From Trichoplax adhaerens (Eukaryota > Animalia > Placozoa): a stretch of DNA of 64,000 nucleotides. The stretch covers positions 3,076,152-3,140,151 of the forward strand of contig NW_002060944.1 in NCBI RefSeq assembly GCF_000150275.1. The letters run 5' to 3'. The position numbers and the translations under genes were made by a program. The notes under the pieces are model-generated. The model had not been told where the DNA came from and did no database searches. It saw only the letters and a program-made list of their open reading frames with translations. Of this stretch, positions 7,501-48,397 are shown piece by piece. The number at the start of each line of letters is the position of its first letter. Within the stretch, counting starts at the first letter, position 1.

Positions 7501-8819
7501 ATCACAGCGAAAGGTAATGTTTATATCCAGAAGAGCAATTGGAAAATAATATCGTTATGGGATATATCGTTACTAGACTGTTTAAGTACTATACTTTATT
7601 ATTATTGTTATTTTATCGTTAATTATGTAATTTAAATATTATCATATTGCAATTAGTTTTATGATAGTGTTGGTGAGGGTACCTAGTTCATAAAATGTTG
7701 CTGAGAGATTAGTTAAGTATATCTGTACATTCTTATTCAGATCCATATTTCGGCCACTGCGGGCTATACAAACTTAGCTATTGATGATATCGTCTGGAGA
7801 AAAGATCAACGTAAGTACGGTAATGTCATTTATCGTATCCATTCAGTAATTCAACTTTAGATACAAGTAACTAATCTTGATTGATATTTTACTGTAAATC
7901 TGTTTTTCCAAGATCGATTCATTTCTTATGTGTCCATTATAATTAATTACAACCAATAATGTTAGATGCAGAAGAAATTCAACCAATTCAAGCGATACGC
8001 AATCATCCAAGATGTGGCATAACCAACTCTCGTATACCTCGTATTGTCGGCGGCAACACTACTTCTCCTCATAGTGTTCCATGGCAAGCATTATTGAATA
8101 TGTTTCATACATCAGGGGGTATTTTTCGTAAAACAACCTGCGGTGGCTCACTAATTAATGAAAATTGGGTTATTACAGCTAGTCATTGTGTATCAAATAA
8201 GCCGATTCTAGTTACGGTTGAACTTGGACGGCATAATATTACAGCAAAAGAAACCTATACTAAACAAATAAGAACAGCTAAGTCAATCTTTCGACATCCC
8301 ATATCTCAACATAAAGATTCCTATTCAGATATTAAAGATCTGGACGGTGATATTGCTTTAATTAAACTAAGTGCACCCGTAACTATTAATAATTTTGTGC
8401 GTCCAATATGTTTACCAGCAGCTAATGATACATTTAATAAATTTAACTTATGTAAAGTTTCTGGTTGGGGTAGAACAGCTGGCCAACAGAGTCACATCTT
8501 ACGTTATGCCAATCTACCTATCTTAAATCGGAAACTTTGTAATAGCACCTTTTCTTATGATGGTCAAATTACCTCTAACATGCTATGTGCTGGTTATATG
8601 CAAGGCTATACCGGTGCTTGCTTTGGGGATAGCGGCGGTCCAATGTCATGTCGCCATCGTCCAAATGCGGTCCTATCGGGATATTCAAACCGATGGTATT
8701 TAGCTGGTGTTGTTAGTGGTGGACGGAGTTGCGGCCGAAAACATTATCCTAGTGTTTATGCAAACGTGACTGCAGCACCCATTTATAGATGGCTATTAAA
8801 CATATTAGGAAATAATTAA
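1514..8819 (+). CDS. Secreted MAM-MAM-EGF-EGF-MAM-MAM-S1A serine protease (paralog A, intact, 16 exons)
   Basis: Hand-spliced GT-AG exons in continuous frame: 1514-1589 ([26 protein letters not shown], signal-peptide-like), 1875-2045, 2167-2411, 2528-2618 (MAM1: CNFE..CQW..GPSYDHT..IAIDDI..C), 3246-3395, 3550-3803, 4483-4564 (MAM2), 4650-4763 and 4860-4982 (EGF: [23 protein letters not shown]; [23 protein letters not shown]), 5621-5719, 6037-6284, 6383-6461 (MAM3), 6888-7025, 7194-7444, 7741-7810 (MAM4), 7966-8819 (RCG..PR/IVGG, TASHC, DIAL, GDSGGP catalytic triad). Confidence 0.9.
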
Positions 8820-10605
8820 TAAATTGTGATAATGTGTCCGAAAATAAATGTTGATATGTAGACATTTCATTTTCTAAATTTATATTACACATTGTGCTTC
8901 ATCTCTGTTTATTTCCATCCTATAATTGGTAAGAGATAAATGAAAATATTTGTTTCTAATTCATTAATACCAATCGTGACTGCTAGCAATGTCTGATTTC
9001 TTTTCTTGACTACAAATAAATGATAGAAATACCGTAGGAATTTTGTACTGTAAGAGCTAAAGGAACATAATAAAATAATTTCCTTCATCAATTTCACATC
9101 TATCGAAAAAATTTAAAAATTTTTTTAGCTTACATGAAATGCGTTTACGGATCAAGCTTGCGTAAGATTCTATTAGTATTGAAAAATGTTATAGTGCCCT
9201 TATATATTTGTGGCTGGCCAGTGTATAGTCCTTACAAAAATACAAGTACATAATCATAATGCAATAATACGAATAGAATGGAGTTCATTTTCAATCTTTG
9301 TGCTTTACCGTCTGTCTCATTCTATCGAGTTTTTCCTGGTGTAACTAGTAAGATTGCATTCAGCTTTCGTTCCAGAAATGGCATTTGGGGCAATTTTGGA
9401 TCGAATGTATTACTTATTTGTTAGGTGTATAATTGCACTAGAGATTAAAACAAATTCTCATGAACTTCCTTCTTAAATATGAACCGTTAAAATTAAAGTT
9501 GTAATCAAGTATCTATTCCCCTATTTTCGCATCTTTAAGAAAATAGTCAGAGCTGCACCAAATAGCAATGCTTAAATTAGATTGGTTAGTCGATTCCAAA
9601 CCCAAGTTCAGACCCGAGATTTTGCGCGTAATAATTGGATTAATTTTAAGTAATGGCTTTAGTCTGTTGTCACTATTAATACTTTGGTATTCTTAAGAGC
9701 TGTATTAAAATGATGTTAATAGGAGATGATATAGCGTTTGATGAATCTTAAATTAGATATCATTTGGTGTATTTGAGATATTTCAATTTCAATGTTAATT
9801 ACTACGATGTCGAGTAAGATATGAAAATTATATTTACTTCTACTCTATTTATTACAGAATTTCAGGAAGTGGACTGCATAAAATCGACAAATCATAGAAA
9901 TGGACTAGTTTCAATCATAGAATACTCTGAATAAATCATCTTATTTTAAAATTTAAAGAATTTTCTGTGATTATGTGTCTAGAAGTCTCATACTAATTGT
10001 TGGAAGACATATATAGAATTAATCCGCTCGCATATATAGTATTGCACATTACTTGTTTTGGTAGGGTATGCTACCATAGATAATTGTATTTTGTACACAT
10101 GTTAACATATTTACAAATTGTTACTATCAATCCCAGTCGTTTATTAGCCATTTCTTGTAAATAACTGGTCTACTTCATTTGTGCTGCTCATTGCAAGACA
10201 AAACAAACAGAAATAGCTTTAACAATTATGTAGCTATAGCCCTAGGATGCCTAAAATTGACTTAGACATTCTTTAAGATTATCTATTTCTAAGGATTGAT
10301 AGTAAAATTATGATTCACTTATCGTAATTAGTTTATTATCACAAAATATAACAAGTAAGATAAAATAAGGATAAGCTGAGAAAAACTACGTATAATCATA
10401 ATATTTGCAACCTTATACATTTACCGGAATATAATATCATAAAATCTATAGATAATTGAGCGGATACGAATTAGGGATATCCTCTAATTCTATGATATAT
10501 TTTAGTTACAGTAGATAATATCTTAGCATAACATTATTATACTAATAAACAGCACATTATTAATTATAGTACACACTATAGAATGAGCATTATCGTAATC
10601 TTAAC

Positions 10606-11700
10606 ATGGTGCCAGATCTTGCTGAGAAGTTGTATATTTTCATAAAGTTTGGAAATGAGCTTTACTATAAACGAATACAATGGGCTATTTGTATGAGATC
10701 TAGTAGTCTTCATCACTTTATAAGCATGAATATTTACCCTCTTGTAATGAGATCATTTCTTCTAGACAGAATAATAAATTATTAACCTCTAATATTAAAG
10801 CTAATATGATAGACTTGTGTGTTTAGAACACCCAGGTAGTAAGCTGATGACTGGGGGAAAATTGAATCTCGGTACGGTAAGCTTTATTTTATATAGATAG
10901 TGCGTGTTTTTCTTATCGTGAATTAAATTAATGAATGGGTTTACTCATTTAGACCAAGATAAACCTTGGCAAGCTATAGAAAATGTACTAACATTGCTTT
11001 AACAGTACAAGATTTTCCTTATCGATCGATTTAGCTGATACAACATAGTTCATACAGATCGCCCTGTTAAAATACAGTTTTAATAACCGAATTATACCTT
11101 GTATGCAAGCATTAAAACATTTCACAAACGATAAGAAGGCTTAAATTTTCGTCAATTCAAGTAAATTCAAAAGTAAGACTTCTTGGAATTTAGCCTATGT
11201 AGTCTAATTGGCTTTTACAAAGACCTAGTTTTCATCATTTAAATTCTACGTGAAATGTCATTAATTCTTGGAAGAGAAAATAGTTTACCGCAATTTCAGG
11301 GCGTGTTGCTCTATATATTTATCGGAATTCGTAGTTATTAAGAACTTTATTGAGTCTACAGTCGATATAAGATAAAAAATCATTCTTCACTCATCGTAAG
11401 CGGAAGAACATTATCGTTATTTTAGCATGGTATCAGATCTTGCAAAGAAGTTACAAATTATCAAAAAGTTAGAAATAGGTTTTACAATCGGTAATTATAA
11501 TGCGCTTTTTGTACGAGATATTATAGCAATCACGTTATGGGCATGCATATTTTCCCTGTTGTAATGTGATTATCTCATCTAAGATAGAATAACAAATCAT
11601 GAACTCCCCTTTCAGGGCTAAGGTGATCGATTTATATGTTTAGAACGCCTAAGTAGCGAGTAGATGACTGGGAAAATTTGATATATCAATCTCAGTCTGC
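10606..11700 (+). repeat. Two copies of a degenerate ~270-bp upstream module (further copies near 500, 22548, 23815, 24375, 25127, 33862, 34340, 38995)
   Basis: Recurring core ATGGT..CAGATCTTGC..AGAAGTT..CATAAAGTT..GCTATTTGTA..TGTAATGAGATCAT..AGATAGAATAATAAATCATGAACTC..TGTTTAGAACAC..TGA(C/T)TGG..CTCAGTCTGC. Confidence 0.8.
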
Positions 11701-14686
11701 TTTCTTCGTATCATACATAGATTACACATATTTTTCTTTTCGAAATTAATGAATGAATGACCTTTCTAGGCTAATTTGAACCTTCAATAGCCATTAAAAT
11801 TGTACTAATACGTATAAAAGCCAACACATTTCACCGTCGTAAGTTTCGTTTCATCGATCCATTTCAACTGATATTATGCAGTTCACCTACATCGATATAC
11901 GAGTAAAATATAGATTTAATTATCAAATTATACATTGTATATAGGCATCAAAAATTTTACAAACCGCACAAAGGCTTAAAAAAATTTATCAGTCCAAGTA
12001 AAAGTCAAAGATGAGTCTTATTAAAATCTACACTATCTAGACTTGTCGGTTATACAGAGCTATACTGGGACTAATCAAATTATGAGCATAGTGTCTGTTG
12101 ATTTTTAGAAGAAAGAGATAATCTATCATATTTTTAGAGTATTAATATTACTTATGTATTCTTGATTGCTATTCTATTCGTGTATTGATCGAATTATTAT
12201 CCCACTATTAATACTTTGTCTACAATAAATAGCTTTTAGGAATCATTTCTTAATTGGTTTTCATTACCATATGGAATCCAGAATAAATTAAATATTACTT
12301 TTGCTACTCTAACTATACATTTATTTTATTTTCCCCAATATTTATACCCCGTAGCGGAACTCGATTCATCTTAAGCATATTATCGTAATATATGTTAAGT
12401 AGCAAATCAGATCAATTGACACTTGACTACAAAGAGATAAAATTTTTCACCGAGATGCTTCGTCGTTCACCTTATTATTACATGGATTTTCACAATTTTA
12501 GTATTTGTATTTGGTTGGACTTCAATTAGGGGTCAGTTAATTCTAGTTTAAGTAATAATATGTCAACAATAGTCACATATGGCAGTAATATTCAAATTAA
12601 AGGTAAAAAAAAATCAGCCAAATTATTGCTCAAAATAAACTATTAGAGATATCTTTACATGACCAGAACAAAATCAGTACATTATGCTCTATTTCGATTA
12701 TTGCAATGCAGGTCAGAAAGATGGTATATTATAAGAAATTTACCTGTCTTCTATACTCGTATAGATCATGATTGTACATTTTGTTAGCACTATAATATCG
12801 TACTGATATATGTAGGTGGAGCAGTATCTACAGAAATCGATACAAGTTGCAATTTGAGAGGAATTTCTGCCAATGGGAAAATAGCCGCCCTTTAGGTTTT
12901 AAATTTGCATGGATTAGAAATAAGGGCGAAACTATCATGCCCAAAACTGGTCTAAGTTACTATCATACTTATCAAAATCCTCACTGTAAGAGAAATTATA
13001 TCTCTAAATATCTCTCAAACAGTTTCCATTTAGAACTTATAGAAAGTTTCACAGCACCAAAAATTTCTTTTAATGTTTACTGTTGACATTTCATTGAAAG
13101 TATTTTCTCTTGGAAATAATTTTAAAGATGGCCATTACGCGTATCTTGAGGCATCTAATCCATTGTACGATAACATTATTTTAAGAGCCCTGTAATTCGT
13201 AACAAAGATAGTCATTGTCTGCGATTTTGGTATAATATGAATGGAGCAGACGTCAGTCGACTACAAGTTGTATCATCCACATTGAAATATTATGGTCAAA
13301 AGAAGGTAATTATGGTAATATTTGGCTATTAGCTGAAGTGGATATATATTATTAAGGGTACAAGAATATAGAGCAAGTCAAACGTATTATTGGCAATGTG
13401 AAATTTATAAAATTCTAGTATACGTAAATACTTTTGTTCTTTTATAATCAGATAACTAATTGACAAATATAATTTATAATATTCCTTTTACGGTAGTATC
13501 TCCAGTACATAAAATTGCAGAATATATACGTTTGCATAATATTATATCATCTTATCAAGAATACTAGTTATTGTTGCATTGGTGATCGTATAGCTTTTCC
13601 TGTAGATATAAGTCATGTTTCATGTTAACTTTATTATGTTTTGTAGATATCAATTGCTGGATACGCCGGAGAAAGCTATGAAGCAGATATTGATATTGAC
13701 AACATTACGTAGAAAAAAGGATTGTGCAAAAATACAGGTAATTCAAATCATTAATAACAAGACAATAAGATATCTTAGCACACTGCATTGTATGCGATAT
13801 ACAGCACCTTCAATTCTAATATATATGAAATAAGAAGTTCAGCTTCCTAAGATTATATATCTCAATCTATTCTCTTTATTATCTCATAAATTTATATAAT
13901 CAAGACAGATTTTAGCTAGATATCTCATGCTAAGCTATCCAGGAAGTCTAAAAATTTAATTAAAATTTCGTAATTACCAATATGAAATCTAAAGTTAGAT
14001 TTTACCATAGTGAAAATTTAAAATTAGTAATAAACGTAAGTAAAACTGCATTTTTAGTATGTAACATTAGCAATTTTCTCTTATACTTAATTTACTATTT
14101 ATTGGGCAAATGTAGTAATCTTTCATGATACCACTTTAGACCCAATAAAGATTAGTGCAGTTGCCATTATGCAATTTTCATATTAATTCTTCGCTCATAA
14201 AATGATTCTGCAAGATCTTAACAATACTTTGAGTCTAACGTAATTTAATGTGAATAGAGAAGCGTCATCGGCTGTGTTATTAATAGATATGCTTTAAATA
14301 TTGCAAAGTTTGATACTTCAAAGTACGATTTTGAATCGGTTACTGCGGCTGGACTAACGTTGGTTTTGATAATTTTAATTGGATTCGAAAATCTGGTTCA
14401 ACTTATAGTACTAATACAGAACCTGATTATGATCATACTTTGCAAACGTCATAAGGTATGCATACTGACTCTTGCTGATGCAAAAATTTTTATAATTTCT
14501 GGGTATTTCAAAGTTAGTATATTTATGTAAAATATAAAGGGCTTTAATGAATTGACATTTTATACATTAATGAGCTAAATTTGTAAAAAATTCAAAATAT
14601 AGGGCTTCATGCGTATATGGAGGCTTCTTATACTGTAGACTAGCTGGAGAGAAAGCTGTGCTAGTCAGCAGAGTTCTGAATAATAA

Positions 14687-15237
14687 TTTCACAATTTCAC
14701 TTCTGCGACAAGGTAACGTACAGTAAAAGTCTATAAGTAGCTACTGACTTAAACGCCCTTTTACTTAATGTTAAACACACACAGCAAAAGACTGTAAAGA
14801 TGAAATTTTTATTAGCAAAGATACATCTACAACTTTTTACCACCCTCTCAACTCAAATGTTCCCGTTTATATAGGAACCGTCTAATTTGTAAACAACAAT
14901 AGTATTATTATTATACCTTACTAGGAGAATTATCTCGAACTAAGATGCTCCTTATATAGCTTTTATATCAGTAAATATTTTGAATCTCTTACTCATACTT
15001 AATCTTAACCTAAGCTCGTAGGTTGTCTAATTCAACTATTATCCACTAGAACTTGAATCATCCTACTGCTATCTATCACACAATAACAATCAATATCAAA
15101 TATGTAATGAACTATTACAAACAACATCCACGTTAAGGCATTACTTATCTTACCTAGTACTACAAATATGGATATTCTCCATACTAGCTAATACTGTACT
15201 TATTAAACTATCCTAATGACAAGGCAACACCGTAACA
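14687..15237 (-). mobile_element. Solo-LTR-like insertion (551 bp) in exon 6 of pseudogene B
   Basis: Termini T(T)TCAC...GTAACA are flanked by a 5-bp duplication AATAA (14682-14686, 15238-15242). Removing it restores VLNNKQPIC (paralog F has VLNNKRPIC). The - strand has TATA-like followed by AATAAA motifs. Confidence 0.8.
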
Positions 15238-16179
15238 AATAAGCAACCTATATGCTTAACGTTTTGGTATCATATGTATAACAGACGAGTTCTTAAATTA
15301 TTAATCGAAGTCGTAACCAAAAATTCAACGGAAGTATTATTGGTAAAGGAAGGTAGTCAACATCGAAAGTGGAACGATGAAAAATTTAATATAAAGTGTA
15401 TTCTACGAGACTATCAAGTACTGTATCATATATATTTAAAAATAGCTATATAAAAAAGTGTCCTTATAGCTACTTGCATCAATATGGAGCAATACTATAA
15501 GTATACACCGTCTTTTATCAAATAACTTATTAAGTTATCATTCTATATATCGGAAATCAGATGTCCTTCTACTTCAATATAAATTTAAGACAATATCTTG
15601 TTTAACATTTTTGAGTTATTATGCATATTTACTTGCATTCAGTACTACTTTATAAAATTTGGTGATAATTCAAGTGTTTATTGGTTGTAGGAAAAGCTGT
15701 GTATTTGATGTGATTATTACTATAGTGCTATTACGTTATTACGTATTATTAGTATAAAGTAGAAATTTTATAAATTATCGAGCGTCAGATGTATATCAGT
15801 TCTGTTAATTTTACACAATAATGTATTGCTACTATACAAAATTAATACTCTTCATTTACGTATGAAAAAAAAATAGAAAGAGCTGAATAAAGCTTTCCAT
15901 TTATCTTTGAATATTTATAATGACGTTATAACGGCTACTCTACCGGGAGGATTTTCCTTTTACTAAATAGAATTTAGGGTAAATTTTTCGTTTATCTAGT
16001 AAACTTTTATAGAAACTCGATCTATAATTTACATGATAATTATAGATTTATTTCGTAACTATTCGTTGCTTCAACTGGTCAAGCGATATCACAATTGACG
16101 ATATCGATATTAATGGAGGCAGTTGTGGTTGGTATTTACGATACAAATAATTCTTGTAAAACTGAATGATTCTTTTATA

Positions 16180-17307
16180 ATACATCATTTAGCATTCAAG
16201 TGAGCAGTTGTCACAAAGCAGTCTTGTGATTATCCTTTCATTTGACTACCAATTCTAATTGCATTCTAACTATTCTCTGAAGAGCTTCAGTAAGGGCTAG
16301 CTAGCTAACTTAATTCTGCTTCTTAATTCAAAATCAACGTTCCACAGTTACTGTATAAATCAAAGTACATTTATTTAATGGATCGTTTAGGTGAAACCGG
16401 AGTTAATAAAGTTCAGATCTTATATATTTTCTTCTCCATCACACAGTATACAGGCACCAAGTATTACACGATTGGGTTAGGATATTGTATACTATAAAAT
16501 ACTGTATGTGACTAGCTATTAAATAATAAATAACATCATTAGAGTCGCTAATTACTATCAATTATCACCGTAAATAATGAGCGCCTTATAAATTAATAGG
16601 CGTAAACAAAAAATTAATCATGCGTAAATGTTATAAATAATTATAATCAACTAACAATGAAGGATTCATCTAATAAATTTTATACAACAATCTTCTAAGC
16701 CATGGCACAGTTAGGAGTGAGCTCTGTAGCAATAGCAGTATTATTCTCTTAGATATTTGTAATGTAACTTAGTATTGTGATTGTAGACTGTTAGCCATGT
16801 GTAGTATAATGTACGGTAGATATTTATCCTAAGAGATATTTGGTAGCTGTAACTATAGACTGTAGTGGTAGAGACTCTATGCTAGAGTACATATGACTAT
16901 ATACAGTAAGCTGTTGAGTTACTAATATGGCTGTAGGTAAAAATAGAACTGTAAATCATATATTAGGATATGGTTAATTCATTGTACTTTGGCTGGTGTG
17001 AATAATGTCTACGTAAGTACTGTAGTCGTATCCATATTGGATTAATGATGGTCGCAGTAGAATAGTCTTACTAAGAATAATTTAACTATGTGTAAAATAA
17101 GGTAAAAGGTTGCCATGCGGATTGTAAGCTGCGAATGCTACGGAAAGTATAAAAGCATGCAACTTTAGATTATTCTGTTAGTTCGTTCTAGAAGTCTTTA
17201 GAAGTAGTATTCGGCTAGAGTAGAGCTGTGTAGTTAATCTTTGTATAAGATTCAATAAAGCCCTTATTTTTCTAAAATTTGGAATTTCGTGATTGGTATA
17301 TATCACA
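16180..17307. mobile_element. Composite LTR-like insertion replacing the EGF1 exon of pseudogene B
   Basis: Non-host DNA between intron-7-like and intron-8-like sequence. Segment 16209-~16731 (TGTCACAAAGCAG...GCTCTGTAGCA) resembles the ends of the 26847 element. The right part has TATAAAA (~17147), AATAAA (~17254) and ends ATCACA at 17307. No clean TSD was found. Confidence 0.55.
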
Positions 17308-17461
17308 ATATTACAACCTTATAATTGTATGTTTCTTTGATTTTGGTAAAAAGATATAAAGCATGCGAAGGTAATCCTTGCCTTTCTGGTACTTGTGTAA
17401 ATTTGGCTAATGGAAGGCAATAAGAATGTCACTGTCCTCCTGAATTTACTGGAAATCAGTG

Positions 17462-18730
17462 TGTAATGAAATGAAATATGTAGAAATCAAGCTACGAAAC
17501 TTCTAACAAACTTTGATTCTACTTTCTTGGCACTCTGGTCGAATTATTAAAACTTTGACACCAAATAAAATTGGGGAAATACCCGATCAACAATTTATTA
17601 AGAAAACGTGAGAAAGACGGATCAAATAACGTTCCAAATACTGAATTCTAAGCATTATAGGTATAAGAAATAAAAAAAAAACAGAACTGAAACTGTCAAC
17701 AACCTAATAAAAAGAAGAACGTTTTCACTTACAACAGTTCGACCCGAAGGTCTTTAAAATTTAACAAGTTCTTAAAAAGAATCTTCATTTACTCTCTACA
17801 CTAAATTTTCTGATTGAGCTATCATTTATAGGCTTTACAGAGTCCTTAGTGGTATTTAAAACTAAACATTTATTAACCAATCACTCTTAAGATCGATTTT
17901 AGAGAACTATGCACCACTTAAGAAAACAAAAATCATTCAAAGTTCAGATACAATTTACCTTATGATTCCCTTACAAAACACTATAAAACCAACAAACTAA
18001 CTAAAAAATATATCGAACTTCACTTCTAACATAATTCCTAATCATTAACACATTATAAAAGTCTAAAATTTAACCTTTAAACAACAAGATTTAGTCATAA
18101 AAATAACAGTTTAACTACTTAACAATCTACACAACCTCTACCATTTATTATCTTATTTTCCATTTTCTCCCTAGACTTTCCTAATGTAACTTTCATGTCA
18201 TGTCATAAAATTCCAAAGTTTCAAATTTCCAAAATCAACTCTTACAACTTTTTCAAAAATTATACAGAACAAAAATTTCGGATGACGTCGACCTCAACCA
18301 GGAGACTGAATCCGAAAATCCGAATTTTGAATAAAATCACATAGTCGCTTATCAAAAATTTTATTAGTATTGACAGTTGATGTTTTAGCATGAAGTTGTA
18401 CTGTAACTGTACGATTATAACCAACATTACAGTACTTTACTGTCATGTTATAATCCCCTTTCTCTATGGATAGGGCTTTGTTACTAAGTCAAATTCATTT
18501 ACAATCCCAATAGACTATCAAAATCCCCTTTCTTTGGATAAGGTGATTATTCTTAGGTTATTTCTATAGTAGTCTATACAATACCTTGTAGAATAGTGAA
18601 GAAGAATAGATGGCGATATCATGATTTGGCTGGGTAAAACTTTAAGATACTATCACTTTCTAGGTATTTTCTAATGTAAAGTAATAATAGTTACGTACTA
18701 AAAGCTATAAAGGACTCTACTTCTTGTCCT
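17462..18730 (-). mobile_element. Truncated LTR-retroelement-like insertion at the end of the EGF2 exon of pseudogene B
   Basis: Starts TGTAATG exactly where homology to A breaks, and host sequence resumes at ~18731 (TCTTACTAATTTAGAACT). A pyrimidine tract CCCCTTTCTCT (~18455-18465) could be a - strand polypurine tract next to an LTR end at ~18452. No TSD. Confidence 0.45.
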
Positions 18731-21700: not shown

Positions 21701-22547
21701 TTCATCTATTTCGGCATTGGTTAATAGCTGAGAATCCCATCAAGTATATTAAAATTTATTTAAATCAGACTAACAAGTTGCTTTCAAACCCTAACTCAAA
21801 TTAGGGACTTCAGTGCAGTAACTTACTGCACTCACTATGCTTGGTGTTAATTTGGTGGTACCGACAGGAGTTGAGTACTCTCTCAATAGAAGGTTGATTT
21901 AAAGACATTTTAGTTATTTGTTGTTTATACGCTTTTATTAGGTGCAATTTCGTCCTTTAGAGTGCCAATATATCTTTTGCAGATGCTATTTGCTTTTTAT
22001 CGCTATTTTTCTGCTTCAATAAGTTAAAAACTACTAATCTACGCTGATTAAGCTTCTTAAACTGTCAATCGAACGTCTGCATTTATTTTTATCGAGATTG
22101 TCGCTTTACTCGAGTAGAAATTCCGATTAAAAATTGTCAGAAATATGAGTTTCCGCAGCTCATTGGCTTTCTTTAACCAAGAAATTTTGAATATACCCAC
22201 TTTACTGTGTTATAGAGAAGGGTATGCATAATGAGAAACGTTATCAAGATAGAAATAATTGTTATAAGATATGTTTAACGCTTTATACAGTATAAACTCT
22301 AAATAAAGTCCCTTATTACCAGTCCCTTTTCAGATGATTGTAAATGACACCCTTGTCTCCATAATGGTAGTTCCTCTGCTAGCTTAGCCACTTCTAATAA
22401 TTGCATCATGCTTGAAATTAATGTTATCTACCATCAATAATGCTAGATTAGGATCCATGTAATCCAATATCAAGTAGTCGCAGTAGATAGCTATATCTCT
22501 TCAGGGAATAAATATCAATGTCAATGAAAGATTTGCTTTACACGATA

Positions 22548-25600: not shown

Positions 25601-25680
25601 ACCTATATCGTTATATGCATATTATATAGATTTAAGTACCGAAAGATACATTGTTTGCAGGTATTAAAACTTCAACAACT

Positions 25681-25730
25681 NNNNNNNNNNNNNNNNNNNN
25701 NNNNNNNNNNNNNNNNNNNNNNNNNNNNNN
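25681..25730. other. Assembly gap (50 N)
   Basis: Run of N just upstream of paralog C exon 1. Confidence 1.
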
Positions 25731-35376: not shown

Positions 35377-36650
35377 ATGCTTCGTCGTTCTCTTCATTCT
35401 TACACGAAATTGGTAATTTTAATATGTGTATTTGGTTGGACTTCAACCAACGGTAAGTGAACTCTAATTAATTAAAATTTAAATAATAATACGTCAACCA
35501 TAATAACGTATGATGGTAATACTGACTTTAAAGATTAAAGATCAGATGAATCATTACTTAACGTAAACTATTAGAAATATTTTCGCATTACTACAGCAAA
35601 ATGTACACACTATAATCTACTTTAATTTGTTATAAAACAAGTCAGAAAGATAATATGTTACAAAAAGTTAACCTGTCTTTATTCTTTATTCGCATAACCC
35701 ATAATTGCAATATTTTTACGTTGTACTATCGTACCGATATATGTAGGCAGAGTTGTATCTACAGATATTGATTTAAGTTGCAGTTTTGAGAGTAAATTTT
35801 TGGAGTAGGAAAATGGCCGCCATCCAAATACGAAACTCGCATGAATAAGAAACAGAGTCAAAATTACTGCCCCTAAAACTAGTCCAAGTTACAATCATAC
35901 TTATCAAAATCCGTACTGTAAGAGAAATTATGTATTTTAATATTTCTAAAGTTGCCTTCCTTATCAAACTGATAGCAATTTTTACTACTTCAAATATTTC
36001 TGTTAATGTTTACTGTTAAAATTATATTGAAAATGTTTTCTTTTGGAAATAATTTTAAAGATGGCGATTATGCGTATCTAGTAACATCGAATTCACTATA
36101 CAACAACGCCATTTTGGAAAGTCCTATAATTCGTAGTAATGATAGTCATTGTCTATGATTTTGATATTATATGGATGGAATAAACGCTAGTCGACTACAA
36201 GTTGTATGATCTACGTCAGAAATATTATGGTCGAGAGAGGGTAATCGTAGCAATATTTAGCTATTAGCTGAAGCAGACATATCCTTAAGATTACAAGAAT
36301 ATAAAGTAAGTTAAGTTCATTATCGGTAATTTGAAATTAACAAAATTGCGGCATGTATAGAACAATCCTGTCTTTTTATAATCAGATTTTTTAATTGATG
36401 AATATAGTTTGAAACATATCCTTTAAACCACTATATTATTTTCATTATATAAGGGTTGTAGAATATAAGTGATTGCATGATGTTTTTTCATGTTAATAAG
36501 AATAATAGTTATTGTTGAATTGAATAACGTAGAGCTTTTTCTACAGCTTCACGTTATGTTTTATATTGACGTTATTATGTTCTGTAGATATCGATCACAG
36601 GGTACGCTGGGGAATGATATGAAGCAGATATTGCTATTGATTACATTACA
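35377..36650 (+). pseudogene. Paralog E: 3'-truncated pseudogene (signal peptide + MAM1 only)
   Basis: Exons 1-4 are homologous to A/C/F but carry multiple in-frame stops (TAG at 35806-35808; CTA TGA TTT TGA in exon 3). Homology ends abruptly inside exon 4 near 36650. Confidence 0.85.
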
Positions 36651-39600
36651 TATTGTTCATTTTATCTTTCTTCATTGCAAGTTAGCTTAAATGCATATAA
36701 CAATTTTCTATTTTCAGTTTTGATAGACATGTATTAATGTGTATAATAATTATAATGCGATATATCAAGAGATTTGCGTTTATTCGATGGAAAATTATTA
36801 CTGTCGTTGGGTGACTGGCAAAATCTTGATCTGATAGAATATTTTTTGCTAAGCTATAAACACGTACCCTAATTAACTATTTACCCCTAATTTACTTCAT
36901 TTTCTGAAACTGATGTGTTTCTAAACCAATTATCTTAAGCTATATATCAAGATTAACCTAGGAAAGTAAAGATGAATCTGAAATGGTATATGATCAATCT
37001 CAATAAAATAATTCGTAGTATCATTTCCATAGTGATGATAATAGCCAAATGAAGATCATTGATAGAGTTACTATGTTAAAATATAGAATCATTTCATCAG
37101 AAAGGCTAGTCAGACATCATCCGACAGGAGCTATAATGATAAAACGTATTCGATTTAAATTTAACAAAGATTTCATAATTACTGTCATACCTGATAGGTC
37201 AGTATGTGAACCTCTACTACAATCAGACTGAATTTGAGATTTGATACAGTATTGATTCTAGCAATGGATAAAGAAATATTGAACTTATTTTTCAATCATC
37301 GCAGATTGGTTTGTGTAATAAATAACGTTAATAAATTTACATATACGTACGGTAATTAATTTGGACATACATATATATCCATACATAAGCGTATATTTAT
37401 AAATAATTAATACGTAGTGCTAACGTCATATCAAGAGGTAACATGTTAGCCTAATATAGTAATATTCAAATTAAAGTGTAGATTAATATATAACTAGGGA
37501 TAACAAATATAAGATGTGTATTCTTTTACAGCATTGGGTTGGATACGATAAGTGGAATAATACTTGATGCTTCACTTGTTCAATAAAGTTGTATTCATCT
37601 ATACAATTTTTTACTCCCTAATCTAACTGGATAAGAAAACTTATCCCAACGCCTGAGTGGAATGCAAATACCTTATTGTGCTATCTAATCCCTCAATTTG
37701 ATGGTTGGTTTGGTACCGTATAAGATTAATCATCAAATAATATCATCGGTTCTTCTGCCATCACTTTCTATCATACATTGCTGCTGTAGACTATTTTAAT
37801 ATAGTATATGTTAAGTATGATGTATTTAGACTTATCGTTATACCTCCTAAATATCATCTGTTCTTACTCTATCGATAACGCTGGTTTATCTTTATATCTC
37901 AATTGCTGCGGTCATTAAGTAGCATTCACTTATTACTATTTGACCTCATTATAACTGATTCGCTGGTCTAGCACAACAACCTATCTATCTTGCACAATAC
38001 TTTCTTCCCAATAAAGAATTTCTATCTATTCCCATATGCAATGTTGCTTATGAATGTAATTGTGGCTAAGAAATCTTCTTTAGTTAGTACTTCGAACTCT
38101 TCATTTACTATTGCTATTTCTCGATCTCAATCATACAGTTCTTGTTAATTAAGCAGTGCTATTTATGATGACATTCATTCGACATCTTACCGTAAAATGC
38201 TAGAAAACGGTCAACTATTAAACTCTTCAAAGTAATGCCATCACGACCGTGAAAATATGTCATTTTATTAAGGTTACATAGGGTACAAATGATGATAATG
38301 ACTGTTAAGCAAGTAATATGCCTAAGTCTGACATTTAACACTAACATAATATTTTATATTTCACCTTCTTCTTACTCTAATTTTTTACATTAAAATAACT
38401 AGTGAACCCCCGCGCTCGTGATACTTCAGATGCTTGTTTACTAAGTAAGATATTTCTGGCTGAACTGCACTGTATTCAGTAAAAAATTATTCTTTCAATA
38501 AGTGTTTTTGTTGGTTACTTGCAGTTTATTGACGATATTGAAAATACCAGTAAATGGTGAGCCAGCACGATTTTCTTATAGTGACAACTGGTAATGTTAC
38601 ATCATGGGAATAACATTTATCGTAAATAATTTCTATAAGTAATAGATTTACTAGAATAAATAAAGATTAAATTTTAATATCATGATTTTTTCAATAGTGA
38701 GAACTGAGTCAGTAATAGTTTTAACAGTGAACTTCCTTATAATTTAATTCATATCATTTTAAGCATACACCGGAAAATTTACCTTTATATAGATCTATTA
38801 ATTTCGCAAAAAATGAACAACAGAAATTATTTATTATATTTATAGTATTCCGTTTCATGCTAAAAAGGAGGCTAATATCACGAACGTAGAATCAAAATTT
38901 GTGGCATTTTAGATTTTTATGAATTCCACCGTAGATATGGAGTCATAAATTATTTTTTAATTCACCCAGGTGGAAAAAAACATCATTTCTCAACGGGGTG
39001 CCTAGTATTGGTTAGAATTTGTATATTATTATAAAGCTGGTAATAAGTCTTGGTATTTGCGTACTAAATGGCTATTTGTAAGAGATTTGCAGTCGTCATC
39101 ATCATATTTACATAAATATTTTGCCTCTTGAAATGAGGTCATTTTATCGAAGATGGAATAACAAATTACTAACTGCCCCTTTCATGACAAATACTATAGA
39201 GAGATAGGCTTAGAACACCCAGGTAGCAAGCTCATGATTGGCAGAAATTTAACATGCCAATCTCAGTATGCTTTACATCATGCTGACGGAAGATGTTTTC
39301 TATATCATATATTAATAAATGAGTTTATATCAATATACGAGAGCCTCTGCAAGTCATTGAAAATATGTTAATATAAAAGTCAACACTATTTCATTATCAC
39401 AAGTTTTTTCTTCATCGATTGATATCAACTGATACAATAAACGGTTCTCCTAAATCTCCATATGATATAGATTTAATTACCTAATGCCTTATCTACCAGT
39501 AAATTAACTAACGAATTTCTTAATGACAGGAAAGCCTAAATATAATTCATCAACCTACGCAAGAGTCAGAAGGTAAGCTTTATTAAATTTTTTCTATATA

Positions 39601-40009: not shown

Positions 40010-43000
40010 ATGCTTCGTCATTCTCCTTCTTTCTTCATGGAGTTGACAATATTAATATTTATATTTGCTTGGGCTTCAATCAGCGGTAAGTTAACTCTAA
40101 TTTGAGCAGTAATATTTCACGATATTCACATATGATAGCAATATTGATATAAAAGATCAAAAGTCAACTGAATCAATGCTTTATGAATAATTTTTCTCAA
40201 CGGATTCCAATCCATGCGTAGTTGTTATTTCAAACTTGCTAATTATTGCATTAAACTAGAACCAATGCTTTTGGAATCAAGTTGCGCAAGAATAATATGA
40301 TTATGCATTGACTTAAAATCTAAATCAATAATCTTTTTTCACCCAAACATGAGCTAGAAGTAGATAATGTAAATAGATATAATATTTATGGTTCATTCAA
40401 CCTACTCTCCATATTACATTATTAATGATAGAAACAAGTCAGTGACCTGATTTCAGATTGAGATCCATTAATGAAATAGAGGTTTATAAAAAAATAGATT
40501 ATGCTCGTACACTGATTGGCAATGCAAATTTATAATCTACCTTTTATCTACTATAATCACTTTAAGGAATGGAAATAAATTCGTAACTCAATTTTAGTCA
40601 AATTTACTAAATACCGGTACAACCGATAGCTCGGTTTTAGATTTACTGTCAATAATAAAATAGTGACAGTGTTCCAAACACGTATTAAATTATAATTATT
40701 AACATAAAATAACCACATTTTTATATAAATCAGCAACCTATTTTCCATCACAGTGAAGGTTTACTTCAGGACAAAGTAATATTCATAATTCGCTTCTTAC
40801 CCACTCTTCTACTTATAATTTTGAGTAGATACCGTAATCCCTTATAATATAATAACACAATGATGCGTATATTGACTTTAAATTTACATCATCTATCCTT
40901 TTCCATCCTCATAAACATTTGATACAGATGGAAATAAAAATTTACATTGCGCATCTGAAATCACTAATATATGATTATCAAGAACGTGTTTAAACCTGAA
41001 TATACGAGTTATTCGAGCATATACTAATTAATTGTTAATGGGTAACGTAATAAGAACTTTTAAGCTTCCATATTTAAATCATATCCATGACTATAGTAAT
41101 AAGAAAGGCATTATTGCAAATTAAGACAGGTCCAGATGCGCACTTTCGTATTTAATAGTGTAGATCACATATGCAGACAGTTTTTGAGAATGTGCTCGAA
41201 CTATACGTATTTAACCTCGCCGAAACTTAATTTATTACACCTACTCTAAGCTATCTGGTGCGCTATTTTATCGACTTGACCATAAATTTATAAGAGCAAA
41301 TTTATTATATACTTTATGGTTAGATAAAAATCAGCGTACGAAATTAAATAGAACAATAGCAATTAGTTATTAGCTAAAATAAGATTGCCGTAATAGGCCA
41401 AACAAACGGTATCGTGCAGTTTAAAGCCAATTGCTGATACATCCTAACATTAACATCAACAAAACATTTATTACATTCATATATTGATTTTTTTCCAGAA
41501 ATAAAGATCAAAAAGACCAAATAATTAAATAGATTTGCTTGTCTTTTTTCCTAACTGGAATAGCTCATGATTGTAATTTTTCATAACATATATTGTGCTG
41601 GCATATTTAGGTGCAGAAGCATTTACAGAGGTCGATTTAAGTTGTAATTTTGAGAGAAATTTTTGCCAATGGGAAAGTGGCCGTCGTACAGATTCTAAAT
41701 TTGCTTGGATCAGAAACAAGGGAGAAACTATCACCTCCAAAACTGGTCCAAGTTACGATCATACCTATCAAAATCCAAATCGTGAGAGAAACAGTATATT
41801 TTAATATTTCTAAAATAGGTTTCCTAATCAAACTGATAGCAAGCTTTACTGTATCATACATTTCTGCTAATGATTACTATTAAAGTTATACTGATAACAT
41901 TTTTCCCTCGAAACAATTTTGAAGGTGGCTATTACGCATACCTTGAAACATCCAATCCATTATACAATAGGGCTACCTTGGAGAGTCCTGTAATTCGCAG
42001 TAATCATAGTCATTGCCTACGATTTTGGTACAATATGAATGGAGCAGACGTTAGTCGACTTCAAGTTGTATCATCTACATTAGAAATATTATGGTCAAAA
42101 GAGCATAATCATGGCAATATTTGGCTATTAGCTGAAGTCGATATATTCTTAAGAGTGCAACAATATAAAGTGAGTTAAGTGGATTATTGATGATGTTGAA
42201 TTAATAAAATTCTCTCACATGTATAATACTTTTGTCCTTTTATAGTCAAATTTCTAATTGATAAGTATAGTTTGAAATGTATCTTTACAGTAGTATGCTG
42301 GTTTACTACATAAATTTTAGAATATAAATCATCGCACAATATAGTATCTTCTTAATGAGAATACTAACTAACTTATCATTGAGTTAAGGACTGAAAAGTT
42401 TTCTGTGAACTTACGTCATGCATGCATCAAGTTAACGTTATTATGTTCTCTAGATATCGATTACTGGGTACGCCGGAAATAGCTACGAAGCAGATATAGC
42501 TATCGATGATATTACATGGGAAAAAGGATTGTGTAAAAATACAGGTAATTTAAGTCATTATTAACAAATAATAAGATATCTTAATACTATGTGATATATA
42601 TGATACACTTTTAGTATTACTGTAGATGAGATAAGAAGTTGAATTTCCTTAGATTGTATAGCTCAGTCTGTTTTCCTTTACCATCTAATGACTTACTCGG
42701 AGAGCGTTCCAAACTATAAATAATTCTGATCGCTTGATAATTTGTAACTACCAATAACATGGAATCTAAAGTTAGATTTTATCATAGTGAAAATTTAAAA
42801 TTAAAGGATACTGTAAATGAACTTGCATATAGAGTACCGTATGTAACATTTGTAATATTCAAATTACTTAATTTCTTGTTGCTTGCTAAACACTGGCAAC
42901 AGTCTATTGCAAGGCTATTTTAGGTCTAGTAAATATTGGTCTAGTTACTGACGTAATTACATGAAATTATTTGTATCCTATGATTATTTGCGACATTATT

Positions 43001-46000
43001 TGATGCTAACCCTTTGTAAGTGAAATAATTCGAAAAAATGAAGTTTATCGACTGTATTATATTAATATAAGTGCCTTTAAAATATTACAGAATTTGATAA
43101 TTTAAAGTGCAATTTTGAATCGGGTTACTGCGGCTGGACTAATGTTGGCTTTGACAATTTTGATTGGACTCGAAGATCTGGCTCAACCTATAGTATTAAT
43201 ACTGGACCTGATTATGATCATACCTTGCAGACGCCAAACGGTAAGCATGTGAGCACATAGTATACTGTAATTCGAAAATATTATATTTCCCGACTATTTC
43301 AAAGATATTATATCTATGTGCAATATAGAGAACTTTAATGAATTTACCTTTTATGCATAAAGTGAACTAAACCTGAGAAAAAATTTAAAATACAGGTTAT
43401 TATGCATATATGGAAGCCTCTGATAGACACGCTGGAGAGAAAGTTATATTAGTTAGCAGAGTTCTGAATAATAAACGACCGATATGCTTTTCATTTTGGT
43501 ATCATATGCATGGTAAACGAGTCGGCAAATTATTAATTAAGGTTGTAACTAAAAATTCAACCGAAGTATTATGGGTAAAGGAAGGTAGTCAAGGTCAAGA
43601 TTGGAAAGAAGCAAAGATCAATATAACGACTATTCCACGAGAATATCAAGTAATACATCGTGTATTTTAAATATACCCATATATTAAAATCTTCTCCGGA
43701 ACTACTTTCTCTAAATAGTTAATTGCATTAATATAGTGCAATTCCAATTCCAATCGTTATCGAAATCCTAATAATCTAGTACGCTATTATTCTACACATT
43801 AGTAAAATAGCTGTACTCCTTCTCTAACATTAATTAAATGTCAATACTATCATATATAGCATTTTCTAATTGTTACACATATTTACTGACTTTTAATGTT
43901 GACTCTTAATTATGTGTGTACTACTTTATATATTGGGTAATAATATCAACTTATGTAGGTATTTATTATTTTAAGAGAAATCCATTCTATTTGACATGAC
44001 TGTAGTAACGATGCTATTAAGCTGATGTCCATAAGAGGGAGAAATTTTACAAATCACTAAAGTTTTAGATTTTTATCAGGTCGATCAATTTTACGTTTTG
44101 GTACATAATAATTTCTATTAATGCATAGTATAAAGATTCGGATTAAGCTTTACATTTGTCATGATACAGTTTATAATGAAAAATTTATAGTTAAGCAATC
44201 AAAATAAGGATTTTTGCTTTTGCTAAAAAATTCTGATTTTATTGATTTAGTAAGCATTTACGACATTAAAACTCATGGTTTATACGCAACATATAGATTC
44301 ATATCGTAGCAGTTTGTGGCCTTGACTGGTCAAGTGATATTGCAATTGACGATATCGAAATAAATGAAGGCAGTTGTGGTTGGTATTTATGATATTACCC
44401 CTATTAAAATACATGATTTTTTCATGGTGATAAAATTAGCATACTGAATAATTCTCTAGGCATACACCCATGTAACCAGAATCCTTGCAAGAATGGTCGA
44501 TGTAATATCATCAGCTCTGTTAGCTATACATGTGACTGTTGGATAGGATATGAAGGAAAACACTGCGAAATCTGTTAGTATTAATAAAATACACTAAAAA
44601 TTAAATATTTATTTTATATTGCTCTCTTAGATATCACAATCTCTTAGCCATTTTAATTGATCTTAGTTAAAGGATATAAAGCGTGCGAAAGTAATCCTTG
44701 CCTATCGGGCACTTGCGTAAGCTTGGCTAATGGAAGGCGATATAAATGTCAATGTCCTCCCGGATTTACAGGAGCTCAATGCTTACGAAGTAACTAATAC
44801 TCACATCATTACAAAATCTTACTAATTCAGAATTTGCTTTCCGACAATGTATAGTCTTACCTGGCTAAATTTTTTAGAGAGTGACAATATTTAATAAATC
44901 GACACCGGAGTATAAAACGAATCTTTTTCAGTTACTAAAATTTATAAGAACCACGTTAGCAATTTAAATTTAGCTAATAATAATATATGATTTACTCAGT
45001 AATTGTGATAGGCTATATTGCTAATAATTTATGGTATAGTACATTTACTAACAATATGATACTAACCTTTAAGGTTTTAATTTTATCTATATAACAGCCA
45101 TAAAACAATCTAGTCGTCAAATCAGACAGGCAATCATGAATTATCCACTTACAGTAATTGACAGAAATAGAATAGAAAGCGTTACTTTATTTTTCCAATA
45201 TAAGCATGACGATTTCTAAACTATTAAGTCATCACTGCGTGGAATACATCGTTAACAATCTCGATTTTAATGCTTGCGCATAGCTTAATAGAAAATTTTT
45301 CGTTTATATTTATAGTTTCGAACTGGACATGCGATTTTAAAAAAGATTTTTGTTCTTGGGAGCAAAGTGATTTAGATACATTAGACTGGGAATTCGCTGA
45401 GTTGGAAAATCGTGGTAAGTTAAGTCAGATCAAAATTAGATACTGTCTGATAAGTCACAGGCAGATATCAAATATGCCTGGCATAGAATTTCAGTGCAGA
45501 ATACAAATAAATTTTTATTTTTACATGAATTGTATCGATACAGAAAATATGATGATACTAGCTCAGTATCATTTATTAATGTTTAAGAATTAAGACTAGG
45601 CGTTTTACAGAAGAAGAGCACATCATTATTCGTACTGCAATTTATTTTACGAGATTAATATTTGTATTTTATTATGATCTTCATTGCAGATCGGTACTTA
45701 AGTTTATTCAATAGAGATGGGAGCAATGGCTTTGCTATTATCAAGAGTCCATTACTGCAAGGCAATGATAAACTGTGCTTCAAATTTTCCTATCTTATCG
45801 TCGGTAATACGACATCATTGGCTGTAACCACCTCCTTTAACGGCAAAATCTGGTCTAAAGATGGTGGAAGGATAAATACTTGGCGTAAAGCTGCAATTAC
45901 AATCGATAAAGTAGACCGTTATGTTCTCTTCAAGGTATCAATATTAATTATTCTTTGTCCGTAAATTATACCAATCATTATCCGAATCTTGAGTACATTT

Positions 46001-48397
46001 AGAATTAAAATGAAATCTTTCGACATAGATTTATATCACAGCATTACGTCGTCGAGGAGACGGAAGGATCGCACTTGATGATGTTCAGCTACTTCCCGGA
46101 AAATGCCGTAAGTGAGGCAAATTTCTTAAATTTTTAGCTTTACTAACCCGCAAGGATCATAACAGTTATAATAAGTACCAGAGTAAATTTAAACTATATC
46201 AAAACTTTAAGGCATAACGTAAAGATTTTATTATTTTCCATTTTACCATATTTCATCGGATAAATATCATGATACAGCGGCTATCTGGGATTATGAAGGT
46301 AAATTAAAAGTAGTAGATAGACAAAATGTTCTAATTAACGATTTCTATTAAAATGAAATGAACGTTAAATGATTTTTATTATCCTATCATAGAAACTATT
46401 TATAGTTTTATAGTTGTATGATTTACAGAATTTGATATTTGTCTCATCACAAATTCGTCTAACAATATACAAACTTCTTCAATTTTATAAATTATCGATA
46501 TCACAGCCAACTTAGATTGCAACTTTCAAGATGACTTCTGTGCTTGGAATAATGCGTTCTTCGATGATTTTGATTGGGGAAGAAGGTCTGGTCCTGTAAC
46601 AACTACATCTATTGGAGCTAAAACGAGTACTAAATTGCGTCCAGGTGCTTAAGTACATCATCAAAAATTAAAATTCGATAAGTATTTATACATTCTAGTT
46701 TATCTTTAAATGTAGAACTATCAAGCACAAGTGATCAATAAAATTCTATATTCAAACATAATTATTAACATAAGTTCCTTATTTCATTAATAGACTATTA
46801 CGCTTTCATCGATGGTATTACCAACATGGAAACTAATCGTGCGGTATTAGTTAGCCCAGACATGAAAAGCAGTGGTAACCGATTTGAACTTACTTTTTCC
46901 TATCATATGTATACCTATGTTGTTGGAACATTATCAATCTCTACAACATATAACGGTGTCATTTGGACTAAAAGTGGCAGTCAAAGCGTTAGTTGGTTGA
47001 GTGAAAAGATACCTATTAACGTTCCTAAAGGACAAGAATATCAAGTAAGCCTATTTCATCACTGCATTGCACATACATATATATCGTATTTCGGTAAATG
47101 TCAATATTTATATAAAATAATTCGAAAATTATATTGTGATGGATATATAGCTACTAGAATATTGGACATCTTCAATTTTTTATTATTGTTATAATTAGCG
47201 TTGATTATGTTATTTAAATGCTATCATATTGCCATCGGATTTGTGCCAGTATTGATGAGCATAGCCATTTCATAAACTATGATGGGGGTTAATTTAAGCC
47301 CATATTTACATCTTTCTATAGATTCATATTTCTGCCACAGCAGGTTATGCCAATTTAGCTATCGATGATATTATCTGGAGAAAAGATCAACGTAAGTACT
47401 TTCCTTTATCGTATCCTTTGAGTAACATATCATTTAGTACAATTCATTCAAACTCGATAAAGGTGTTTTAGTGCAAATCTGATTTTCTATTATCCATTGA
47501 TTTCCTATTTGTCCATTATAATTAATTATATCTAACAATACATTAGGTGCAGAAGAAATTCAATCGATTCGAGCGATACCCAATCATCCAAGATGTGGTA
47601 TAGCTAACTCTATACCTCGGATTGTTGGCGGTAGTGTTGCTTCTCCTCATAGCGTTCCATGGCAAGCGTTATTGACTGTGCATACTACGATAGGGAATCT
47701 TCGGCGTAGAAGTACTTGTGGTGGCTCATTAATTAATGAAAACTGGCTCATTACAGCAAGTCATTGTGTATCGAATAAACCATTTCTAGTTGATATTGAA
47801 TTTGGACGGCATAATCTTTTAGCAGAAGAGAACTATACTAAGCAAACAAGGATCGCTAAGTCTATCTTTCTACATCCCATATTTCAAGATAAATATTCCT
47901 ATTTGCATATTAAAGATATGGATGCTGATATTGCTTTAATTAAGCTTAATGCACCAGTAGCTATTAATAATTTCGTGCGGCCAATATGTTTTCCAGCAGC
48001 TAATGATACATTTAATGAATTTAACTCATGCAAAATCTCTGGTTGGGGTAGAACAGCTGGCCAGCCGAGTCATATCTTACGTTATGCCGATGTCCCTATC
48101 TTGAATCAGAAACTTTGTAATAGTACCCATTCTTATAATGGTCAAATAACTTCTAACATGTTATGTGCTGGTTATATGCAAGGCTACACAGATGCTTGCT
48201 ATGGTGATAGTGGTGGTCCACTATCATGTAAGCATCGTCCAGATGCAGTCCCATCTGCGTATTCAAATCGATGGTATTTAGCTGGTGTCATTAGTGGTGG
48301 ACAGGGTTGCGGACAAAAATATTACCCTGGTATTTATACAAGCGTAACAACAATACCCATTTACAAATGGTTATCAAAAATATTAGAAAATAACTAA
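40010..48397 (+). CDS. Secreted MAM-MAM-EGF-EGF-MAM-MAM-trypsin-like serine protease (paralog F, intact, 16 exons)
   Basis: Exons 40010-40085, 41611-41781, 41925-42169, 42454-42544, 43091-43240, 43396-43649, 44297-44378, 44460-44573, 44667-44789, 45316-45414, 45690-45934, 46029-46107, 46507-46644, 46794-47044, 47322-47391 and 47547-48397. Motifs PR/IVGG, TASHC, DIAL and DACYGDSGGP (Asp189) are present. Confidence 0.9.

Follow-up and report, generated by a model that had tools for sequence, protein, structure and literature searches.

Diverged pocket residues in a tandem array of MAM-stem S1 proteases of Trichoplax adhaerens

We analysed a 64,000-nucleotide stretch of DNA from the placozoan Trichoplax adhaerens (RefSeq assembly GCF_000150275.1, contig NW_002060944.1, positions 3,076,152 to 3,140,151, forward strand), hereafter the window. 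It is AT-rich (~30% G+C), sits in a 9.7-Mb scaffold and carries a tandem array of S1-family serine protease genes with stems of MAM and EGF domains. Three intact genes (A, C and F) stand among three decayed copies (B, D and E), and the intact copies differ at positions 189 and 226, two residues of the pocket that receives the substrate residue before the cleaved bond (P1).

Three intact genes among decayed copies

A tblastn search with the protease exon of gene A as query reveals five protease exons in the window, all on the plus strand (Table 1). Self-comparison of the window shows that the tandem units share 66–89% DNA identity, introns included. Unit E has no protease exon and retains only a signal exon and MAM1; unit B is without MAM4 and without the first ~82 codons of its protease exon. 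Unit D starts within a remnant of the last MAM2 exon (MAM2c) and is therefore a tandem duplicate of the 3′ end of C, 1.39 kb long; its protease carries Gly19Glu and Gly193Asp besides a stop and a frameshift. In the public annotation D is modelled as a gene, TRIADDRAFT_53233 (181 aa), with an intron that removes the frameshifted middle and thereby loses residues ~140–185.

Table 1. Coordinates of the genes, decayed units, protease exons, pocket codons and assembly gap in the window
Feature	Position	Strand	Content
Gene A, intact	1514-8819	+	ATG 1514; MAM1-MAM2-EGF1-EGF2-MAM3-MAM4 exons ~1886-7830; exon map, open frames, Pfam, phase-1 junction into protease exon
Unit B, pseudogene	10928-22267	+	stops/frameshifts in most MAM/EGF exons
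Gene C, intact but short	25901-30540	+	signal exon (ATG 25901), MAM1, MAM2, protease exon
Unit D, partial tandem duplicate of C's 3′ end	30896-31931	+	MAM2c remnant and protease exon
Unit E, fragment	35377-36653	+	signal exon and MAM1 exons, several stops
Gene F, intact	40010-48397	+	signal exon (ATG 40010), MAM/EGF exons 41628-47399, protease exon
Protease exon A	7966-8819	+	intact
Protease exon B	20388-20984	+	~10 stops
Protease exon C	29687-30540	+	intact
Protease exon D	31117-31931	+	one stop and one frameshift
Protease exon F	47547-48397	+	intact
Pocket of A	8613-8753	+	Gly189 (GGT, 8613), Ala190, Phe192, Gly216, Ser226 (AGT, 8751)
Pocket of C	30334-30474	+	Ser189 (AGT, 30334), Thr190, Tyr192, Ser197 (GDSGSP), Gly216, Thr226 (ACT, 30472)
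Pocket of F	48191-48331	+	Asp189 (GAT, 48191), Ala190, Tyr192, Gly216, Gly226 (GGT, 48329)
Pocket of pseudogene B	20802/20940	+	Gly189 (GGT)/Thr226 (ACT)
Pocket of pseudogene D	31725/31863	+	Asp189 (GAT)/Ser226 (AGT)
Assembly gap (run of N)	25681-25730	.	non-coding

Pfam matches, exon maps and searches were all obtained exon by exon. A and F share one exon order: a signal exon, MAM1 and MAM2 (three exons each), EGF1, EGF2, MAM3 and MAM4 (three exons each) and a single protease exon. Mapping of the A exon peptides onto the window gives 16 open exons for A and eight for C. Gene C is without the EGF–EGF–MAM–MAM block, and its MAM2c exon joins the protease exon directly; this joint preserves the frame of C, since phase 1 applies to the MAM2c donor as well as to the acceptor of the protease exon. 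All junctions checked (signal exon, MAM2c, MAM4c and protease acceptor) are phase 1, and the block could therefore be gained or lost with the frame preserved. The same MAM2c-to-protease junction without the block is found in C and D (29478–29686 and 30896–31116).

The first exon of each intact gene has 25 codons (M-L-(L/R)-H-S-P…) with a hydrophobic core and ends at a G/GTAAGT donor (1589/1590 in A). It resembles a cleavable signal peptide, a C-terminal anchor is absent from A, C and F, and the products of these three genes are probably secreted. The protease exons match Pfam Trypsin (PF00089) with E-values of 1e-57 to 1e-62; matches to Pfam MAM on exon pieces are above the gathering score in three cases and weaker in the others. 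MAM exons lie upstream of the protease exon in the same gene, the last junction is in frame at phase 1, and A, C and F agree in exon order.

The catalytic set is kept in A, C and F and also in X, a placozoan orthologue (P0001, L015/L016) from two European Nucleotide Archive (ENA) marine metagenomes that consists of an F-like exon, 81% identical to F, and an upstream MAM4c exon. All four have Ile16, His57, Asp102, Gly193, Asp194 and Ser195, and with the triad, the Gly193 oxyanion hole and the Asp194/Ile16 pair they appear competent as S1 proteases. Ser214 and all 10 cysteines are also kept in A, C and F. The activation site is Arg15–Ile16, and both the pro-region cysteine (…PRCGI…) and Cys122 are conserved across all copies. 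In related proteases this cysteine pair links the activated domain to the stem; by analogy, the catalytic domain here probably stays disulfide-linked to its stem through the same two residues, which makes the ‘MAM-tethered’ scaffold of the earlier note a reasonable reading. An AlphaFold model of C has a mean predicted local distance difference test score (pLDDT) of 82.7 and a predicted template modelling score (pTM) of 0.85, and at least 500 S1 structures match it in Foldseek at E below 0.001.

Two further features are common to all array members and X: residues 214–216 read Ser-Gly-Gly in place of the near-universal Ser-Trp-Gly (8700–8730, 30420–30450 and 48280–48310 in A, C and F), and an insert of ~8 residues follows Cys201. 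Trp215 is retained in the other Trichoplax paralogues.

Pocket residues and their direction of change

Chymotrypsin numbering was taken from gap-free HMMER alignments of F to matriptase-2 (9nrc) and plasma kallikrein (6i44) over residues 189–198 and 211–229. The spacing Ser214-x-Gly216-x-x-Cys220-(5)-Pro225-226 is as long as that of trypsin, and on these alignments the residue numbering of the array pockets is secure. An earlier note on this DNA had assigned trypsin-like and non-trypsin pockets to the array, and its reading of the residues is borne out: all six cited codons of A, C and F lie where it placed them and encode the residues that it named, the codons for Gly189/Thr226 in B and Asp189/Ser226 in D were located, and both GDSGSP in C and Phe192 in A are present. 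Loop 1 (residues 185–188) is identical in A, C and F.

We then compared the pockets with the known specificity types. The trypsin-type combination of Asp189, Gly216 and Gly226 is found in F alone, and not in A (Gly189/Ser226) or C (Ser189/Thr226). An elastase-type pocket, with bulky residues at 216 and 190, is found in none of the intact genes: residue 216 is Gly throughout, and residue 190 is Ala in A, Thr in C and Ala in F. The pancreatic elastase pocket has Val216/Thr226 and that of neutrophil elastase Val190/Val216/Asp226. C shares just Ser189 and Thr226 with the former, and A just Gly189 and Phe192 with the latter. The pockets of neutrophil elastase and proteinase 3 are small because of bulky residues at 190 and 216 plus Asp226. 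The comparison of A with these two enzymes, also drawn in the earlier note, does not hold up well, A having Ala190, Gly216 and Ser226, unlike those pockets. With Gly189, Val216 and Asp226 as the triplet of human neutrophil elastase and proteinase 3, neither the triplet of A (GGS) nor that of C (SGT) is of their type. Foldseek results for the C model were rejected as evidence for an elastase: pancreatic elastases come first, but the E-values of the top 50 matches span less than two orders of magnitude.

The 189/216/226 triplet is a relatively good predictor of P1 specificity, though not its sole determinant, and the combination of Gly216 and Ser226 is taken to indicate a chymase-like enzyme (PMC8537139). 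Under the rule from the same source (Ser, Ala or Gly at 189, Gly216, and Gly, Ala or Ser at 226), A fits the chymotrypsin/chymase type by its triplet (Gly189/Gly216/Ser226), and C (Ser189/Gly216/Thr226) is borderline because Thr226 is larger.

Which of these pockets came first can be judged from the relatives of the array. Asp189 is present in seven of seven other Trichoplax S1 paralogues (36–44% identical to F), and Gly226 in all six of those whose match reaches that position. X likewise has Asp189/Gly226, as do ~80% of 330 related animal S1 domains. Because these paralogues, X and most animal S1 domains agree, Asp189/Gly226 is, by sequence comparison, the ancestral state, kept in F, and the pockets of A, B, C and D are derived. 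The proposal that the array reached its non-trypsin pockets independently fits this polarity: with F ancestral and A and C derived, they arose separately from those of vertebrate chymotrypsins and elastases.

The codons at 189/226 can be arranged as a chain in which neighbours differ by one nucleotide: F GAT/GGT, D GAT/AGT, A GGT/AGT, B GGT/ACT and C AGT/ACT. The pseudogenes D and B hold the ‘missing’ intermediates of this chain. A, B, C and D form a clade against F (support 98/98), but even with the 3′ flanks added the tree does not settle the branching among these four, nor with it the sequence in which the pockets changed. A change of Gly226 to Ser on the shared stem is the likeliest first step in common, and either a single path or parallel losses of Asp189 may have followed. 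That the five exons record every intermediate of a selection-driven, four-step path from a trypsin-type to a Ser189/Thr226 pocket, with F staying as trypsin-like activator of its derived paralogues, seems to us an unlikely scenario. If true, with selection driving either this order or parallel runs along it, the locus would be a natural and testable record of stepwise P1 change in an animal S1 protease.

We regard it as fairly likely that the locus is a placozoan-specific birth-and-death array of secreted S1 zymogens, in which F is of trypsin type and A and C very probably have no Arg/Lys preference. Each gene would encode a signal peptide, a stem (MAM-MAM-EGF-EGF-MAM-MAM in A and F, MAM-MAM in C) and a chymotrypsin-fold protease on a single last exon. 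Activation would follow a cut after Arg15, before Ile16, with the domain probably then tethered by the disulfide. F, with Asp189/Ala190/Gly216/Gly226, is predicted to cut after Arg or Lys, and within the array it would be the only copy able to perform the Arg15 cleavage of the others, a role that another tryptic enzyme might also fill. Once an F-like gene had duplicated, Gly226 may have changed to Ser first in the A/B/C/D lineage; Asp189 would then have been replaced, by Gly in A and B and by Ser in C, and Ser226 would have become Thr in B and C. A and C very probably lost the preference for Arg and Lys because the charge partner Asp189 is gone. For both, the predicted P1 residues are uncharged and hydrophobic, and C would take them through a narrower pocket, which Thr226 and Thr190 should both narrow and make more polar.

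Pocket changes could instead be functionally silent, with extended subsites and the MAM stem setting the substrates and A, C and F acting alike. The limited reach of the triplet as a determinant (PMC8537139) leaves room for this, and Gly215 and the insert after Cys201 are common to all copies. Asp189, however, is the partner of a P1 Arg or Lys and is invariant in F, X and the seven other paralogues; its removal is not expected to be neutral, and we consider silent pockets highly improbable. A loss of Arg/Lys preference in A and C, the reading preferred here, is followed below through the age and selection of the copies.

Age, selection and surroundings of the array

Synonymous divergence (dS, Nei–Gojobori) between protease exons is 0.36 for A–C, 0.41 for A–F and 0.47 for C–F, as against 0.96–1.00 for each copy with X. 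Introns and flanks of the paralogues are 70–78% identical (Jukes–Cantor distance ~0.26–0.35), and X aligns to F in its two exons only, its introns and flanks giving no alignment. Least-squares dS branches are clock-like only with X as outgroup (F 0.20, stem plus A 0.23, stem plus C 0.25). By neutral sites, the array copies coalesce after the split from the X lineage.

Searches for relatives agree with a local origin. The nearest other S1 domains in the Trichoplax genome are at most 44% identical; in an exhaustive HMMER search, among the best-scoring 150 representatives of a library of 1.84 billion proteins none exceeds 43% identity to C except X (65%) and D; and a scan of Joint Genome Institute (JGI) metagenomes gave S1 genes at no more than 46% identity and nothing closer. 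The local, lineage-specific clade proposed in the earlier note therefore stands, as a placozoan clade within the databases searched, with X and D as the only closer relatives. ‘Young’, its other term for the array, holds relative to X (dS 0.36–0.47 against ~1.0) and fails in absolute terms, three of the six copies having already decayed. A word search for A- or C-type orthologues elsewhere returned only the F-type X, from the two ENA metagenomes, plus A and D of the window itself; the lack of such an orthologue is uninformative because the X contigs are only 1.5–1.7 kb long.

We also estimated the ratio of nonsynonymous to synonymous rates (dN/dS) by branch, with bootstrap 2.5–97.5% intervals: 0.11 for X (0.06–0.16), 0.14 for F (0.06–0.38), 0.35 for A (0.18–0.88), 0.43 for C (0.22–0.99) and 0.97 for the stem to A and C (0.25–5.5). 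Pairs that include pseudogenes give 0.55–0.79, and three-point arithmetic on pairwise distances gives ~0.9–1.4 for the lineages of D and B. Across the MAM/EGF exons each of the pairs A–C, A–F and C–F has a ratio of 0.22. Private amino-acid changes number seven in F, ~49 in the A lineage and ~57 in the C lineage. In the paralogues dN/dS peaks in residues 16 to ~85 and from 189 to the end (0.40–0.52), and for F–X it is flat at ~0.1.

Positions 189 and 226, each substituted more than once, both belong to a class of 16 sites (of 284) at which F equals X and A and C each differ. For at least two of the three determinants 189, 216 and 226 to fall in this class, p = 0.009; this value is post hoc, because these very positions were what singled out the finding. 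Should C and D be sisters, which their common MAM2c/protease junction implies, the terminal branch of C has three nucleotide changes in codons 189/226 against ~0.34 expected (P = 0.005, also post hoc). The overall pattern of rates shows A and C as genes maintained by purifying selection, with a burst of replacements after duplication that falls partly in the pocket. B and D are about as old, and unlike A and C they show obvious damage. The ‘complementary specificities’ of the earlier note, like any adaptive division of labour among the array proteases, are conjectural.

Several results weigh against a selected divergence in a recent array. Branch dN/dS never exceeds 1 with confidence, and for the stem, at ~1 with its wide interval, positive selection is not established. 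Of 12 classical S1-wall positions five have changed, as against 68 of 272 elsewhere, a difference given without a formal test and unlikely to be significant. A single exchange at Asp189 in trypsin gives a poor enzyme, not a chymotrypsin, as classic mutagenesis showed. A and C might likewise be weak enzymes, because loop 1 is unchanged and residue 189 alone is no specificity switch. A and C have roughly threefold the dN/dS of F and X, a difference that relaxed constraint alone could produce. Finally, in the protein tree rooted with distant paralogues X groups with F (97/91), by which the duplication would predate the species split.

The rates of A and C also suit an explanation by decay, in which these two genes are redundant and drifting towards pseudogenes and the departure from Asp189 abolished function and brought no new specificity. 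B, D and E, half of the array, are already dead, pseudogene B has also lost Asp189, and loop 1 was not remodelled in A or C. By contrast, A and C keep all of their 16 and eight exons open with conserved splice phases, their terminal-branch dN/dS is below 1 by bootstrap, and their MAM/EGF exons are as constrained as stated above. Catalytic, oxyanion-hole and disulfide residues are all retained in both, whereas the unconstrained B and D, at similar dS, have acquired stops, frameshifts and Gly193Asp. Decay of A and C is unlikely on this balance.

The grouping of X with F bears on another possibility, an old array homogenised by gene conversion, in which A-, C- and F-types predate the split from X and the pockets are ancient and kept by selection. 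Among 17 sites at which F equals X and A equals C, the outgroups match A/C at six and F/X at two. Conversion within the array is itself likely: over the MAM3b–MAM3c exons, A (6069–6780) and B (19685–20389) are 89% identical, as against 72–77% across the rest of the unit. Still, dS is rather even along the protease exon, and ~70–78% identity over nearly whole 9-kb units, introns included, would need whole-unit replacement, which amounts to a new duplication. Ile/Val or Phe/Leu swaps account for several of the ‘shared’ sites, and B and D keep the F-state Ile227. The tree itself does not reject an F+A+C+D clade (approximately unbiased (AU) test, p = 0.076). Its rooting with distant paralogues conflicts with the synonymous sites, and long-branch attraction may have drawn together the outgroups (branches of at least 0.7) and the accelerated A/C/D stem. 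We judge an old, homogenised array to be quite improbable, and retain a duplication after the split from X followed by replacement in the pockets of A and C.

The window has one assembly gap. Its flanks are collinear with the A unit (25473–25668 with A 811–1001, and 25740–26833 with A 1350–2430), and by this comparison the assembly probably lacks ~300 bp of non-coding sequence. The ATG of C follows 171 bp downstream of the gap and its pocket codons 4.6 kb downstream; no reading frame spans the gap and no exon is touched. An influence of the gap on the pocket finding was considered and rejected, as it is non-coding and upstream of C.

A nearly identical second copy of pseudogene B is present on a small unplaced contig (G000:C1163, ~5757–6341, minus strand; L006). 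It has the same stops as B at a dS of 0.04 and represents a haplotig or else a duplicate of very recent origin. Elsewhere in the window, a minisatellite (61875–62118; 58-nt unit, ~3.8 copies) in the more G+C-rich end (36–37%) yields long spurious open reading frames on both strands, and an 85-aa open reading frame at 55321–55578 has a signal-peptide-like start and a His-rich spacer.

Known systems and meaning for placozoan proteases

Tandem S1 paralogues that diverged at 189/216/226 are best known from the vertebrate haematopoietic loci, namely the chymase locus (granzymes, cathepsin G and chymases) and the genes of neutrophil elastase, proteinase 3 and NSP4. Tryptase, chymase, elastase and Asp-ase specificities arose in these loci by birth and death, with pseudogenes left behind (PMC8537139, PMC7914634). 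The vertebrate enzymes differ from those of Trichoplax in being single-domain granule proteases activated by removal of a dipeptide; the placozoan proteins have a long MAM/EGF stem, an Arg15–Ile16 site and an independent origin.

Among non-bilaterian animals, the trypsin-MAM proteins of Cnidaria (the Nematostella ‘tryptome’) also combine MAM with a C-terminal S1 domain in a lineage-specific expansion (PMC6767649). Pocket divergence within a tandem array is not reported for that clade. F shares 37% identity with a MAM-S1 protein of Actinia (P0075), which falls outside the array in the tree and has an Asp189/Gly226 pocket and one MAM but no EGF.

Of the proteases with solved structures, enteropeptidase and the type II transmembrane serine proteases (matriptase-2/TMPRSS6, TMPRSS2 and hepsin) match best in sequence (E-values 1e-45 to 1e-38). 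They are similar in having a modular stem (with MAM in enteropeptidase), an Arg–Ile site and a disulfide tether. The Trichoplax proteins are only ~35–40% identical to them, have a short, cleavable-looking signal peptide and not a signal anchor, are without LDLa, SRCR and CUB domains, have Gly215 and not Trp215, and include two members without Asp189.

Insect S1 genes mostly encode single-domain or clip-domain proteases. Their clusters resemble the present array in being large and tandem, with trypsin-, chymotrypsin- and elastase-type members whose specificity is predicted from the triplet (PMC4676143, PMC10036332). They differ in that a MAM/EGF stem is not reported and in that the expansions are phylogenetically unrelated.

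The literature search found no paper that mentions the Trichoplax locus or TRIADDRAFT_53233. The published digestive trypsin (Ta-63128) and chymotrypsin (Ta-63088) of Trichoplax have identifiers that differ from TRIADDRAFT_53233, and MAM domains are not reported for them. Since divergence at 189/216/226 in tandem S1 arrays is well known, the Trichoplax case is an independent example of it, and neither a new mechanism nor a new protein family.

Placozoans digest their prey externally with very few cell types, and little is known of how their set of proteases diversified. The locus offers a compact experimental system, in which three intact enzymes and two pseudogene pockets lie single-nucleotide steps apart on a shared background. 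The route seen in vertebrate immune proteases and insect clusters, tandem duplication and then changes at residues 189 and 226, has been taken here independently in one of the earliest-branching animal lineages and on a multidomain MAM/EGF scaffold.

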